The position numbers and the translations under genes were made by a program. A DNA stretch of 38,457 nucleotides from Octopus bimaculoides (Eukaryota), in contig NC_068988.1 in assembly GCF_001194135.2 (NCBI RefSeq), forward strand, positions 78,150,085 through 78,188,541, in the 5' to 3' direction. Shown here piece after piece: positions 2,051 to 7,887 of this stretch. Below the pieces are notes generated by a model, which was given only the letters and a program-made list of their open reading frames with translations, was not told the DNA's origin and did not search any database. How positions within the stretch are numbered: the first letter of the stretch is position 1; every line of letters starts with the position of its first letter.

Positions 2051-3132
2051 TATATTCTTTCCCAAGTATTATATCACAAAGAAGAAGTCACCAAGAAAAA
2101 AGTAAAAGAGGGAGAAACATGAGAGAGAAAAAGGGGGAGTCCACTTGGTATTGTCCATTGTAATATACATTGTAATATGTTTATCCTTTAAGTTGATACA
2201 TTTACATAAACGTTCATCGGTACTCCGAAATCTATCCATATTGTGCCCAAATANNNNNNNNNNNNNNNNNNNNNNNNNNNNNNNNNNNNNNNNNNNNNNN
2301 NNNNNNNNNNNNNNNNNNNNNNNNNNNNNNNNNNNNNNNNNNNNNNNNNNNNNNNNNNNNNNNNNNNNNNNNNNNNNNNNNNNNNNNNNNNNNNNNNNNN
2401 NNNNNNNNNNNNNNNNNNNNNNNNNNNNNNNNNNNNNNNNNNNNNNNNNNNNNNNNNNNNNNNNNNNNNNNNNNNNNNNNNNNNNNNNNNNNNNNNNNNN
2501 NNNNNNNNNNNNNNNNNNNNNNNNNNNNNNNNNNNNNNNNNNNNNNNNNNNNNNNNNNNNNNNNNNNNNNNNNNNNNNNNNNNNNNNNNNNNNNNNNNNN
2601 NNNNNNNNNNNNNNNNNNNNNNNNNNNNNNNNNNNNNNNNNNNNNNNNNNNNNNNNNNNNNNNNNNNNNNNNNNNNNNNNNNNNNNNNNNNNNNNNNNNN
2701 NNNNNNNNNNNNNNNNNNNNNNNNNNNNNNNNNNNNNNNNNNNNNNNNNNNNNNNNNNNNNNNNNNNNNNNNNNNNNNNNNNNNNNNNNNNNNNNNNNNN
2801 NNNNNNNNNNNNNNNNNNNNNNNNNNNNNNNNNNNNNNNNNNNNNNNNNNNNNNNNNNNNNNNNNNNNNNNNNNNNNNNNNNNNNNNNNNNNNNNNNNNN
2901 NNNNNNNNNNNNNNNNNNNNNNNNNNNNNNNNNNNNNNNNNNNNNNNNNNNNNNNNNNNNNNNNNNNNNNNNNNNNNNNNNNNNNNNNNNNNNNNNNNNN
3001 NNNNNNNNNNNNNNNNNNNNNNNNNNNNNNNNNNNNNNNNNNNNNNNNNNNNNNNNNNNNNNNNNNNNNNNNNNNNNNNNNNNNNNNNNNNNNNNNNNNN
3101 NNNNNNNNNNNNNNNNNNNNNNNNNNNNNNNN

Positions 3133-3391: not shown

Positions 3392-3674
3392 TTTGCTTTC
3401 TTCTTTCTTATTTGTGTGTTTTTCCTTACTAACGATCAGCCATTTTGTATTTTGTATTTCTATTACATGTGTCTTTGTTTGTGCATGTGTATACCCCTAT
3501 GTGTGTCTATACTTCGTAAGTGCATGTGTGTGTGTGGGAAGTGCCTGTATTATGTGTATCTCCTGCTTATACACGTTTGTTTAATTTATTTTTATTTATT
3601 TTGTTCATTATTTTTTTCTATTCTTTCTTTTTTTTGTATTTAATTTAATTTAATTGTGTTAATTTCATTTGTTC

Positions 3675-5796
3675 CTTTTTATAGTCGATCCACAATGTGC
3701 TCAGGTTCGTTTTCCTAGTTTTGCAGTCTTCAAGGGTCATTTTGTTTTGGTCTTTGCATCTGTAGCTCCCTTTTCGACAACCTTTTTGTTCTGGTGGTAG
3801 TAGGTTGTTTTCTTCTAGGAATGTGTATGTTCTTTCAGTGATTACAGATGTTAATATTTTATACATTGTTGGTAGACAGGTGGTTGGTCTATAGTTCTCT
3901 GGGTTATCTGTTTTTTGGTATTAGGTATGTCACTCCCTGTGTCAACCAGTCTGGGCTATTTTCTGGGTTTTTCATGACTTCATTGTATGCTGATGACATA
4001 TCTCCATGTATATCAACTAGCTGTTTGATCCAGAAGTTTGGTACTCGATCTATTCCCAGAGACTTCCAATTGCTGGTCTTTTTCAGGGCCAGAGTGATCT
4101 CCTCCTTTTGAATATCTTCCCATTCCTGTACTTCTTTATTTCAGGAGTGTTTCTTGTTCCTTAATCAATTCTGCATCTTTTGTTATGTTGTTTTTCATTT
4201 TCCCATATCGTACGCCAGAAATTTTCCATATCCTCTTTCTTTGGTGGTTGCTCAACATTTATTTGTTCTTTACCGAGTTCCCTGTAAAATTTCTTTCCAT
4301 CTTCTTTAAATGATTTGTTTTGTCTAAATTGTTTGCTTCTCTTTATATATCATAACAGTCGTTGTGCCTTTGCTTAAATTTTTTGTTTTAGGTTTTCTTT
4401 TGCTTCAGGTATTTCATTTTTTTGTTTGATCCCATGCTTTTTGCATATTTTCTTGGCTTTTCTTTGGTTGACCTGGTTTCCATTACTTATTTCGGTTAGT
4501 ATTGATAGGTCGCCTCTCATGCATTGTATATCCTTTTCAAAGTTTTCTTTCCATTTTGGTTGTCTTTTCTTCTGTTGAGCAGTTTTCTTTTTTAGTTTTA
4601 TGCCTTTTGCTTCAGTAATAGCTTCAGCTGTAGCATAGGCTAGTTGGTTTAGCAATGTTATATTTAGTGGTTCTATTGTTGTTGAATGTTATCTCATCTA
4701 TTATATTATTGCCAATTTTAATCAACTCCTTCAGGTTCTTATCCATACTGACTTTTGGTAGGGGCTCTCTGTCTGTGGTGTTTTGTGCTTTTACATGTTC
4801 CCATTTTCTCTGTATTTCTTCTTTTAGTTCCAAATATTTCTCCCTATCCATGTCACTGTTGGTTGTTTTACAGGTTCTTCTATCTCATTACCCACAGAGG
4901 GCTCCTCAAATACATCCTCTTCTTGGTTTTCTGTAGTCCCTATTTCTATTTCATTTGTATTTGGTGTTATACAGTGAGATCTGTTGACATTTTCTTTTAT
5001 TTCTTCCAGCTCAGTGTCTGTGAGCCTCCTGTTTTTAATGATATCTCTTTGGACATTCCCTAACTTGTTGGGATCCATATTTAACCTTGAAGTTGAATTT
5101 TGTTGTCTTCATAATTGATAAGTCCTTTTTGTCGTGTTATCTTCTGATGGTGTGACTACCGCTGTGTAGTATGCTTCCATTACTAGTTTGTACTCTTCCC
5201 AATTCCATTTAGTTCTAGGTGTTTTTGCGTGTAGTATGGCTTGCATCGGTGGGGCTCAGGTTGAGGTTTTCCTTGGTTAAGTTGCCCACAGTCACCCAGG
5301 AGTGAGTAGAGTTCGAATCAGTAACCAACTTTTCACTCCCAGCCTGACTCCTCACTAGGAGGTGCACACCTTGTTGACCCATGAGACGAGCGATGCGGTA
5401 TGGGTTGTTTTTATTGACTTTATCCATTATGGTTAACTACTGGTATATTCATGGTGATTGGCCACATACTCCTTGAGTACCTGAGTGTGCCCTATGCGTA
5501 TCACACACATTGCTGGGTCCACCTTCAAGGCCATTGTCCATCTGACTCTACGGGTCATCCGCCCGCTCTGCCGTCTCAGACTTCATGCACTTAAGGGAAG
5601 GTATCCCTTCAGCCACAACAGCAGTCTAAATGCCATTGCCCCTCATTTAGTTTAGCACCACTGTCAAGTGGAGGTCCCGGGGCATGACCACCAGTGTGCA
5701 CAACTGGCTACTTGGAGTCATAAGTGAGAGTTGAGCTTTTGTTGTGAACTAGTGATCACCATCCATGCTATCACTAACAAATACCCCATATGCCCC
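3675..5796 (-). mobile_element. R4/Dong-clade LINE, intact 5' end, truncated within RT (pseudogene)
   Basis: N-terminal KWNWEEYKLVMEAYY and NKLGNVQRDIIKNRRLTDTELEEI; KENLKQKI*AKAQRL; RT motifs LPPEQKGCRKGSYRCKDQ and LWIDYKK, where the element breaks off. It is flanked 5' by (TAA)n. Confidence 0.88.
5640..5796 (-). ncRNA. HDV-like self-cleaving ribozyme at the 5' end of the Dong/R4 element
   Basis: Elements appear in canonical order: P1 GGGGCAU (5796-5790)/AUGCCCC (5685-5679); P2 CUCUCACUUAU (5730-5720)/ACUAAAUGAGGG (5651-5640); P3 GAC/GUC; L3 starting UCC; GG after P1 for P1.1; P4 CCACU-UGAC-AGUGG; J4/2 GCUAA (C at 5655). Confidence 0.75.
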
Positions 5797-5830
<34 letters not shown>

Positions 5831-5860
5831 CATTATTATTATTATTATTATCATTATTAT
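5797..5860. repeat. (TTA)n microsatellite at the Dong/Penelope junction
   Basis: Visible trinucleotide run. Confidence 0.95.
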
Positions 5861-5910
5861 AACTCGGAATCTTGGGGTTAGTAGCCCGCGCTCTTAACCA
5901 CTATGCCATA
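5861..5910 (-). promoter_or_regulatory. tRNA-derived segment (A box, truncated B box) in the Penelope 3' region
   Basis: TGGCATAGTGGTTAAGAGCGCGGGCTACTAACCCCAAGATTCCGAGTT; the second copy (~29721-29785) keeps the B box GAGTTCGATTCC. Confidence 0.65.
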
Positions 5911-7887
5911 TGCCCGTGGTCAATTATGGAGTGAATTTTAGGGCTTATAAATCTAATATTCTCCTATCCTTCCTTAATACCAGTTCCCATATGCTATTCA
6001 TATCTGCACTCGGTCTGGTCTGCTTAGGAGGTTGTTGTGTCCTAGCATATGTGCTGCTTCTTTTAGTTTATGTATTTTCCAGTGGTGTTCTCTGTCTATT
6101 GTTTTAACTTCATCCCACAGGGGGAGGTGGTCTCCATTTTTCCATACATGATCAGTTATACCCAATTTATCAATATCTCCTCATGTCACAGCTTTGCAAC
6201 ATTCCTCTACCCTTATTTTGAGGGAGCAGCATGTTTCACCTTTGTATAACCTACCACAGCTGTATGGGATGGAGTACACACAGTCTTTGGTCATATTCTC
6301 TTCTATTGGTGGTTTTACTCGAAGGAGATATTTGCGAAGTGTTGTATTACTCTTGAACACTGTCCTAATGTCATATAGGCTGCATATCTTTTGTATCTTT
6401 TCGGAGAAGCCTTTCACATAGGGTAGACAGACTGTGGACAGTTCATTGGCCTCATCCTCTCTGTTCTCCATAATTGGAGTAGATAGTATATTTTGGGGGT
6501 AGTTGTTGCTTAATAGATTGTTACTGAGCTTGATCATTTCTTCGTGGTGGGTATCACGATCGCTACTTATATTCTTTGCTCAATGCTTTAGGCACTGAGC
6601 AATCCTTTTCTTTACACTGTATGGATGGTGGGAATTGAAGTTGAGATATTGTCCAGTGAAGGTCAGCTTGTAGTACTTGGTGCATGTTATTAATACATCC
6701 AGGAATGCTAGCTGATTGTCTTTTTCTTTTTCCATTGTGAACTGTATGGATGGCTTTATTGAGTTCACATGATCTAACAGCACTTGGATATCTTCCTGGT
6801 GGGGCCACAGTATAAAGGTGTCATCAACATATCGCAGCCATAGGGTTGGTTTTAGTGGTGTTGATCCTAAAGCCAAATTCTCAAAGTATTCCATGTATAT
6901 ATTGGCTATTATCGGTGATAATGATGAACCCATAGCTAAACTCGCTTCTTGTTGATATATATCAGTGTCCATACTGAAGTAGGTAGTTTCTACACAGAAG
7001 GTCAACATTTCCATCAAGTTTCTTATTGGTATACTAGTGCATTCTTTTAGACAGGTGTCTGTCACTAGCTTTTCTTGAATTACCAATAGTGCTTCCCCAG
7101 TTGGGACTTTGGTGAACAGGCTTATCACATCTAGACTCACCATCTGGTTAGATTCAGTGGGGGTATCCTTGTTCAATTCTGTGAAGTGGGTTGAATTCTT
7201 CACATACGATGTTGACTTTCCTGCTAATGGACGAATTTTATCCACAAGGAAGCGGCTCAGTGGATGACATGCTGAACCTCTACAGCTCACTATAGGTCTT
7301 AATGGAATACCATCCTTGTGAATCTTAGGGAAACCGTACATGTGTGGTAGTTTACTGTAGTGTTGAGTCAGTTGTCTGTACTTCATTGGTGTAAAGTGAT
7401 CCTTGTTCTTGATCAAGATCTGTGACAACTTCCTCTTTGTTTTCAGAGTTGGGTCTTTCTTTACTTTGCTGTAGCTACCATCACTTATAAGACTTGCCAA
7501 TTTTTCAGAGTAGTCAGACTTGTTCATCACCACTGTAGCATTTCACTTGTCCGCTGAAAGTATTATGATGGAATTGTCACTCTGTAGTCTTTTGATAGCG
7601 AACTTTTCTTCCTTAGTGATGTCTGATTTGGGAAGTTTTGCTTTTTCCAGTACCTGTCTCACTTTCCACCTTAGTTCATCTCCCTGAGTTTTTGGTATCT
7701 TTATGGCAATCTCTTCAAGGGGGGCTATTATGTCCAAGTATGTAATGCACTTGATGGTTGTCACAAAGTTGAGACCTTTGTTTAGTACTACTTCTTCAGA
7801 GCTTTCTAGATGTTGGCTACTTACATTAATTACTGCTTTCACAGGCGGGTGACGGACTTCAGTCTTCATTCTCTTAAACTTCTTAAT

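Follow-up and report, generated by a model that had tools for sequence, protein, structure and literature searches.

A candidate HDV-like self-cleaving ribozyme fold at the 5' end of a decayed Dong/R4-type LINE in Octopus bimaculoides

Self-cleavage at the 5' end has been described for several long interspersed nuclear elements (LINEs). RNA of the Bombyx element Dong self-cleaves via a ribozyme resembling that of hepatitis delta virus (an HDV-like ribozyme) exactly at the (TAA)n/Dong junction (Eickbush et al., PMC3774820), and the upstream cleavage product is a 21-nucleotide (nt) (TAA)7 leader (PMC3774820). R4, R2, RTE and L1Tc likewise self-cleave via HDV-like ribozymes (PMC3774820), which agrees with the statement in a first-pass annotation of the DNA treated here that such ribozymes process the 5' ends of R2, R4 and RTE elements. 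This DNA, referred to below as the window, is a stretch of 38,457 nt from Octopus bimaculoides (assembly GCF_001194135.2, contig NC_068988.1, positions 78,150,085 to 78,188,541 of the forward strand). It carries a dead Dong/R4-type LINE in (TAA)n, and the 155 nt at the 5' end of this element (5796-5642, minus strand) probably represent an HDV-like self-cleaving ribozyme fold or its relic (probability about 0.65). That the fold is HDV-like or derived from such a ribozyme is judged likely to quite likely. Dong-type LINEs are already known to include a case with an HDV-like ribozyme at the 5' end; a stem-loop inserted in loop L3 of the fold would be new if real.

The architecture of HDV-like ribozymes is described by helices (P), loops (L) and junctions (J). 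Cleavage takes place at the first P1 nucleotide, and P1 opens with a G1-Y pair (PMC4908430, PMC6326823). The core is built from L3 and J4/2 (PMC4908430). Two cytosines of L3 pair with two guanosines immediately after the P1 3' strand to form P1.1 (PMC6326823), and the 5' U and 3' G of L3 form a reverse wobble (PMC3774820, PMC6326823). The catalytic cytosine is the first position of J4/2 (PMC10879173), which reads C-N-R-A (PMC6326823). L3 has about 6-8 nt in the family and reads U-C-C-N-C-G, with a conserved C before the terminal G (C23, PMC6326823). J1/2 domains that are large and structured are found in nature, where they activate ribozymes of this kind (PMC4908430). The features of the candidate fold, with pairings and positions checked by script, are as follows.

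5797-5860, minus strand: (TAA)n target-site microsatellite (Tandem Repeats Finder period 3, 21.3 copies, 93% matches), ending ...UAAUAA
5' of G5796, minus strand: predicted cleavage site, at the start of the P1 5' strand
5796-5790 and 5685-5679, minus strand: P1, GGGGCAU/AUGCCCC, seven Watson-Crick pairs, 104 nt between the strands
5789-5729, minus strand: J1/2, 61 nt, with its own 7-bp helix UAGUGAU (5776-5770)/AUCACUA (5756-5750)
5787-5781, minus strand: alternative P1 5' strand GGGGUAU, inside J1/2
5728-5721 and 5649-5642, minus strand: P2, CUCACUUA/UAAAUGAG, eight positions, seven pairs and one C.A mismatch
5719-5717 and 5688-5686, minus strand: P3, GAC/GUC, 3 bp, abutting the P1 3' strand
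5716-5689, minus strand: L3, 28 nt, UCC and AAGUA, then the stem-loop GCCAG UUGUGCACA CUGGU, then G
5715-5714 and 5678-5677, minus strand: P1.1, CC of L3 with the GG directly after the P1 3' strand
Between the P1.1 GG and P4, minus strand: spacer GAC, 3 nt (J1/4)
5673-5656, minus strand: P4 hairpin, CUCCAC/GUGGUG with loop UUGACA, six positions including one U.U
5655-5650, minus strand: J4/2, CUAAAC, with C5655 at the first position, that of the catalytic cytosine, followed by UAA
5642-5635, minus strand: competitor of P1, GGGGCAAU, overlapping the P2 3' strand by 1 nt
5428-5641, minus strand: rest of the 5' untranslated region (UTR), which totals 369 nt (5796-5428) and precedes a start codon at 5427

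The P1 5' strand opens on 5796, the first base after the (TAA)n tract, and its first pair, G5796-C5679, places a G1-Y pair at the element boundary. The order P1-J1/2-P2-P3-L3-P3'-P1'-P1.1-P4-J4/2-P2' is fully present, with one unpaired U between the 5' strands of P2 and P3. The nested double-pseudoknot order proposed in the first-pass annotation was thus recovered with every pairing it had listed, including all seven pairs of P1, the separate helix in J1/2 and an unusual L3 with AAGUA and a GCCAG/CUGGU hairpin topped by a palindromic loop. Two of its details needed amendment: P2 does contain a mismatch, but the bulge also proposed there is not needed, and the sequence competing for P1 is present but lies at 5642-5635 and not at 5643-5636. 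Eight of 11 listed family features gave a clear result. Six were found, namely the boundary G1-Y pair, the helix order, P1.1 (CC/GG), the U...G of L3 (U5716 first and G5689 last, as in the reverse wobble), J4/2 C-N-R-A (C5655-U-A-A) and a P3 abutting P1'; a short single-stranded L3 and a covariance-model match were absent.

The closest described systems are Dong (Bombyx mori) and R4 (Ascaris). These are LINEs of the same R4-clade kind, Dong also targets (TAA)n, the ribozyme forms the first element sequence in each, Dong is cut at the TAA|G junction (PMC3774820), and the presumed job, release from a co-transcript, is the same. The octopus copy differs from Dong in having no detectable sequence similarity to it, the 5' end of Dong starting with GCUCCCUAAAAUCC (primer, PMC3774820), and from both elements in its 28-nt L3 and in that its ribozyme is predicted only. 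The R2 ribozyme (consensus of Eickbush) shares a P1 of 6-7 bp, a P2 of at least 5 bp that is often mismatched, a variable P4 and the catalytic C (PMC3774820); few nucleotides are invariant there, among them the L3 G in reverse wobble with the L3 U (PMC3774820). R2, however, resides in 28S rDNA and often cleaves upstream within 28S sequence, its J1/4 has 0-2 nt as against 3 nt in the window, and its L3 is short. Ribozymes of the drz-Agam-2 type also have a long J1/2 with its own helix (P1.2) between P1 and P2, and P1.2 'pinches' P1 and P2 together and speeds cleavage (PMC4908430). In them the additional domain is part of J1/2 or P4 and thus outside the core, whereas the second extra helix of the window fold lies inside L3, which belongs to the catalytic core. 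Minimal and theta HDV-like ribozymes have the catalytic C first in J4/2 as well, where a C-to-U change inactivates (PMC10879173); P4 is short or absent in them and J1/2 and L3 are short, whereas the window form is expanded.

The element that carries the fold was characterized through its protein and its relatives. Its reading frame and surroundings are as follows.

3660-5427, minus strand: decayed LINE open reading frame (ORF), a lysine-rich N-terminal region followed by the start of the reverse transcriptase (RT)
2254-3132: assembly N gap, beyond the element end near 3660

The ORF is broken by many stops and frameshifts, and the element ends near 3660 with its 3' part missing. About 330 lysine-rich amino acids precede the RT without a Pfam domain and without an apurinic/apyrimidinic endonuclease (APE), and are followed by a weak RVT_1 match. 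A protein search returned 53 relatives from fish, beetles, a lizard, shrimp, coral and eukaryotic contigs, at about 40-50% amino-acid identity and none above 55% over a substantial part of the query; the best of them, P0001 (E 4e-10), aligns its residues 10-69 with residues 10-69 of the window ORF read from the start codon at 5427. This family start codon and the residue-for-residue alignment of the N-terminus bear out the proposal that the LINE begins exactly at 5796, and the placement of the 5' end there is supported by the sequence. DNA of the relatives was taken from the contigs encoding P0002-P0006, P0013, P0026 and P0032 and from 65 metagenome loci (the numbers beginning with L below). 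In 12 loci, 18 copy 5' ends could be read, and 17 of them directly follow (TAA)n (L007, L015, L018, L024, L029, L032, L065, L071 and L072, together with seven of eight L001-L004 copies); the exceptional copy, in L001-L004, begins after the A-rich 3' end of a preceding copy. LINE 5' joins typically carry one or two extra, variable bases at the junction. The relatives have RVT_1 and a weak zf-RVT match and no match to Exo_endo_phos (APE), and among PDB structures their RT is nearest to R2 proteins (E 2e-14). The C-terminus of an L002 copy, inspected by eye, contains CCHC and RPDIVV...IDIAVPGD, resembling the restriction-like endonuclease of R2/R4; a search for the endonuclease domain of the relatives gave no Pfam or PDB sequence match. 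The element is thus a well-supported (TAA)n-specific, APE-less, Dong-like LINE of the R2/R4 supergroup, an assignment made from target and domains. The Dong/R4 label of the first-pass annotation accords with this, given the (TAA)n target, the missing APE and the RT nearest to R2 proteins.

In L001-L004 (ENA ERZ25067903 contigs), Dong-like elements stand head to tail with only short (TAA)n runs between them, and one and the same 245-nt 5' module occurs in subfamilies that differ in their ORF starts.

The probability that the fold arises by chance was measured with a descriptor built from published constraints (PMC6326823, PMC3774820, PMC10879173): G1-Y, L3 U...G, L3 CC/GG after P1', and J4/2 C-N-R-A. 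The sole departure from these constraints was an L3 permitted up to 40 nt. The window passes this descriptor, as do 6 of 200,000 shuffles in which only the P1 5' strand was fixed and 34 of 200,000 in which both P1 strands were fixed. A relaxed, structure-only descriptor was passed by 35 of 20,000 and 161 of 20,000 shuffles under the same two conditions, respectively. On 592,732 nt of real sequence (the window and 73 loci, both strands), the published-constraint descriptor gave three matches, two of which are the window locus and one an unrelated, weak 6-bp case in L072. The position was preset as the first LINE base after the target repeat, and therefore the arrangement is no chance find of a search. 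A chance origin of a nested double pseudoknot with the published signature nucleotides at this one position is very unlikely.

Two further descriptors were discarded. One, a very loose HDV descriptor, matched 212 times within 340 nt of a relative and was dropped as uninformative, and a 'strict' structural descriptor gave 412 matches in 548 kb, equally uninformative, and was replaced by the published sequence constraints; only 8 of the 412 have a 7-bp, all-Watson-Crick P1.

The mechanism proposed for this 5' end takes catalysis and role from the family, the anatomy, statistics and element identity being what the analysis itself established. A LINE without a precise promoter of its own at +1 would be transcribed in a longer RNA starting in the host (UAA)n flank, and the tract at 5797-5860 would provide the (UAA)n leader of this read-through transcript. 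In the emerging 5' UTR, P1, P3, P1.1, P4 and P2 would form the nested double pseudoknot. With C5655 as the general acid and a bound Mg2+ ion, the 2'-OH of the last flank nucleotide would attack the phosphate 5' of G5796, and the outcome would be an element RNA that has exactly G5796 as its first nucleotide and carries a 5'-OH. The J1/2 hairpin may serve as a peripheral domain of a known kind, comparable to the natural 'P1.2' that brings P1 and P2 together (PMC4908430).

Several observations weigh against a functional HDV-like ribozyme at this site. L3 has 28 nt and is partly helical, whereas in the family it is short, single-stranded and part of the active site; the nucleotide before its terminal G is U and not the conserved C, and reading of the sequence gave no P3/L3 solution with an L3 of 6-10 nt for this P1. 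The covariance models of the Rfam HDV, CPEB3 and drz families were looked for, and cmscan found no HDV-like or other ribozyme match in the window at the gathering score and no HDV-like match at E<=10 in an 800-nt slice (5300-6100). The Rfam result carries little weight, since pseudoknots are ignored by the models and both a 61-nt J1/2 and a 28-nt L3 would be penalised. Cmscan of L001-L005, the L001 5' UTR and seven relatives found no ribozyme family either.

Thermodynamics belongs to the same side of the balance. Three strands of the GGGGYAU type (5796, 5787 and 5642) can pair with the sole AUGCCCC. For the full 167-nt region (z = 0.44), the minimum-free-energy fold lacks P1; in it, the partner of AUGCCCC is the downstream GGGGCAAU. 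When P1 is kept, nt 38-57 pair with nt 92-111 in a fold of -34.5 kcal/mol, as against -26.0 kcal/mol for the nested HDV part. This long irregular helix (5759-5740 with 5705-5686, minus strand), preferred by about 8 kcal/mol, competes with the J1/2 hairpin, the L3 hairpin and P3. P2 is weak, with one C.A mismatch and a duplex energy of about -2.6 kcal/mol. One point speaks for the fold: in nascent transcripts of 118-121 nt, the helix that closes the minimum-free-energy structure is P1. Since z is 0.44 and P1 is missing from the full-length fold, folding is unusable as support.

Comparison with other copies provides the remaining points of this kind. Copies were sought in the window, among the 53 protein relatives, in the 65 metagenome loci and in viral contigs. 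There is no second copy inside the window, and at the DNA level none of the relatives can be aligned with the window 5' UTR, which leaves a single decayed copy without covariation. A pattern scan of the viral contigs returned seven matches, all in unrelated GC-rich phage. Of the distant relatives, most (L001-type, L007, L024, L029, L018 and L072) are without the canonical HDV signature; an HDV-like reading was attempted for each of these 5' ends and rejected, as no solution combined CC/GG, a P3 abutting P1' and the C of J4/2. One related lineage speaks for the fold: L065, together with L015 (which has one mismatch in P1), has the opening motif GGGCAA-GGGGUA in common with the window and permits an HDV-like model exactly where (TAA)n ends.

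L065:126-340 and L015:725-936: extent of the HDV-like model
L065 helices: P1 AAGGGCA/UGUCUUU, P2 GUUCCCG/CGGGUAC, P3 CCA/UGG
L065 remainder: L3 CCAUAGUCUGGGG (13 nt), GG, P4 GUAACCC/GGGUUAC, J4/2 CAAU

With P1 fixed, 50 of 50,000 shuffles pass the L065 model, in which the +1 base is A. In L050 and L041, two loci that are 68-75% identical to L065, neither P3 nor P2 is kept, and this counts against the HDV-like assignment. The L065 model as a further HDV-like case is suggestive only.

The next question concerns the 19-nt L3 stem-loop (5708-5690), which consists of a 5-bp stem, GCCAG/CUGGU, and the 9-nt palindromic loop. HDV-like descriptors keep L3 short because L3 builds the active site. The functional ends of the loop, U and CC on one side and G on the other, are kept on either side of the stem-loop. 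One explanation is that the ancestry is HDV-like with a family L3 of about 9 nt (UCCAAGUAG), and that the 19-nt block GCCAGUUGUGCACACUGGU was inserted in this dead copy or in a small dead subfamily, so that no new structural variant is implied. The strong decay of the copy, with its many stops and frameshifts, fits this explanation, as does the result of removing the 19 nt from the sequence, which leaves UCCAAGUAG with a near-canonical length and with U, CC and G retained. In addition, the block, a near-perfect palindrome, has a form that can arise through replication errors, and it is seen in no other copy. Against a lesion stand the complete P1, P3 and P1.1 (24 nt), from which it follows that decay of the region is modest, the longer-than-canonical 13-nt L3 of the L065 model and the lack of flanking direct repeats that would mark an insertion. 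A lesion is a possible, though doubtful, origin of the stem-loop.

That the stem-loop is a functional variant is rather unlikely, and the same holds for the related proposal that it is lineage-wide and that an extra helix ('P3.1') in the active-site loop is compatible with cleavage. A tolerated variant is favored by two observations: all 24 nt of P1, P3 and P1.1 are intact despite a stop-riddled ORF, and the only other candidate lineage, L065, also has a long L3. If the stem-loop were lineage-wide and active, it would represent a structural subclass missed by all published descriptors and covariance models, in which L3 is fixed at about 6-8 nt. Dong-like LINEs could commonly have a member of this subclass at the 5' end, and the palindromic loop GUGCAC might also act as a dimerisation or protein-binding site. 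Activity would further mean that the core tolerates more than assumed and offers a new site for engineering switches, and that a class of retrotransposon ribozymes has escaped searches so far. Were the stem-loop a lesion, the locus would be an ordinary further Dong/R4 5' processing ribozyme in another host genome.

An unlikely explanation of the whole 5' end is a non-catalytic structured leader, in which a 5'-terminal helix serves protein binding, RNA stability, translation or a promoter and the HDV signature is coincidental. The relatives lend it some weight, as a 5'-terminal helix of 5-9 bp recurs in copies without the HDV signature (L007 CCCGCCC/GGGCGGG, L029 CUGCCUU/AAGGCAG, L072 GUCUCAC/GUGAGAC and L001-type UGUCCUGGG/CUCA(U)GGGUA). 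Moreover, 12 related 5' UTR copies share a different, conserved H-type pseudoknot of about 45 nt with compensatory changes in all three helices.

L001:4849-4905, L001:8865-8920, L002:1063, L002:4853, L003:2968, L003:4854: pseudoknot copies
L004:4613, L004:9973, L009:70, L021:37, L024:68, L049:13: further pseudoknot copies

This pseudoknot consists of helix A (CCCCG/CGGGG), helix B (AGAC/GUCU), the hairpin CCAGGU-UGGC-GUCUGG and the junction GCUA. It is internal in L001-type copies, after a 115-nt leader, and 5'-terminal in L024. Its topology is that of HDV-like P1/P2/P3 without CC/GG and without the J1/2 spacer, and the junction C is not invariant. Window thermodynamics, which favors a non-HDV interior within P1, and the lack of an Rfam model match point in the same direction. 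A coincidental signature is nevertheless hard to reconcile with the shuffles, as the rest of the fold appears in only 34 of 200,000 (published constraints) or 161 of 20,000 (structure) when both P1 strands are held, and with the correct placement of the catalytic-position C, the CC/GG pair and the L3 U...G.

Two sequence relationships of the window 5' UTR were also proposed and rejected. One was homology of the window L3 hairpin to the hairpin in the pseudoknot of the relatives; the other was a duplication inside the window 5' UTR, with GGGGCAUAUGG at nt 1 and GGGGCAAUGG at nt 155. Both looked plausible by eye, but their local alignment scores fell within the shuffle distribution.

A tRNA-like 5' end cut by RNase P, with GGGGCAU/AUGCCCC as the acceptor and CCAGU-UGUGCAC-ACUGG as a T-arm-like hairpin, is highly improbable: it would account for the 7-bp terminal helix, the 5-bp hairpin stem and the 7-nt loop, and both a relative with a tRNA-Gly-like gene directly upstream of its ORF (L014) and a neighbouring retroelement whose tRNA-like end shares GGGCATATGG with the LINE 5' end speak for it, but ARAGORN found no tRNA in the window, Rfam gave no tRNA match at E<=10 (5300-6100), the 5 nt between the hairpin and the acceptor-like strand preclude stacking, and the D arm and anticodon arm are missing while 60 extra nucleotides intervene.

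The tRNA-Gly(CCC)-like gene of L014 was predicted by ARAGORN at L014:84-168, directly upstream of the related LINE ORF and after an (AAAT)n/A-rich tract. It may reflect 5'-end formation of the RNase P type or be a chance neighbour.

Upstream of the (TAA)n tract, the window contains a second retroelement (5861-7533, minus strand). Its RT ORF spans 6580-7533 (RVT_1, E 4.5e-12), and another ORF (6181-6537, minus strand) contains the motif YSIPYSCGRLYKGET, which is reminiscent of the Penelope-like GIY-YIG and has no Pfam match. The 3' end of this element (5899-5995) has a 95%-identical copy at 29766-29862 (within 29710-30180, minus strand). At the end of each copy stands a tRNA-like piece and then (ATA/TAA)n, and therefore the target repeat of the LINE may be the tail of the second retroelement. 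The 10-mer GGGCATATGG occurs on the minus strand at 5915-5906, in the tRNA-like piece, and at 5795-5786, at the LINE 5' end, with further scattered matches; its presence in both could be due to chance, template switching or common descent. Elsewhere in the window lie a degenerate array of the TTAGGG type (33519-33673) and a tandem repeat of 42/84/126 nt (1221-1521).

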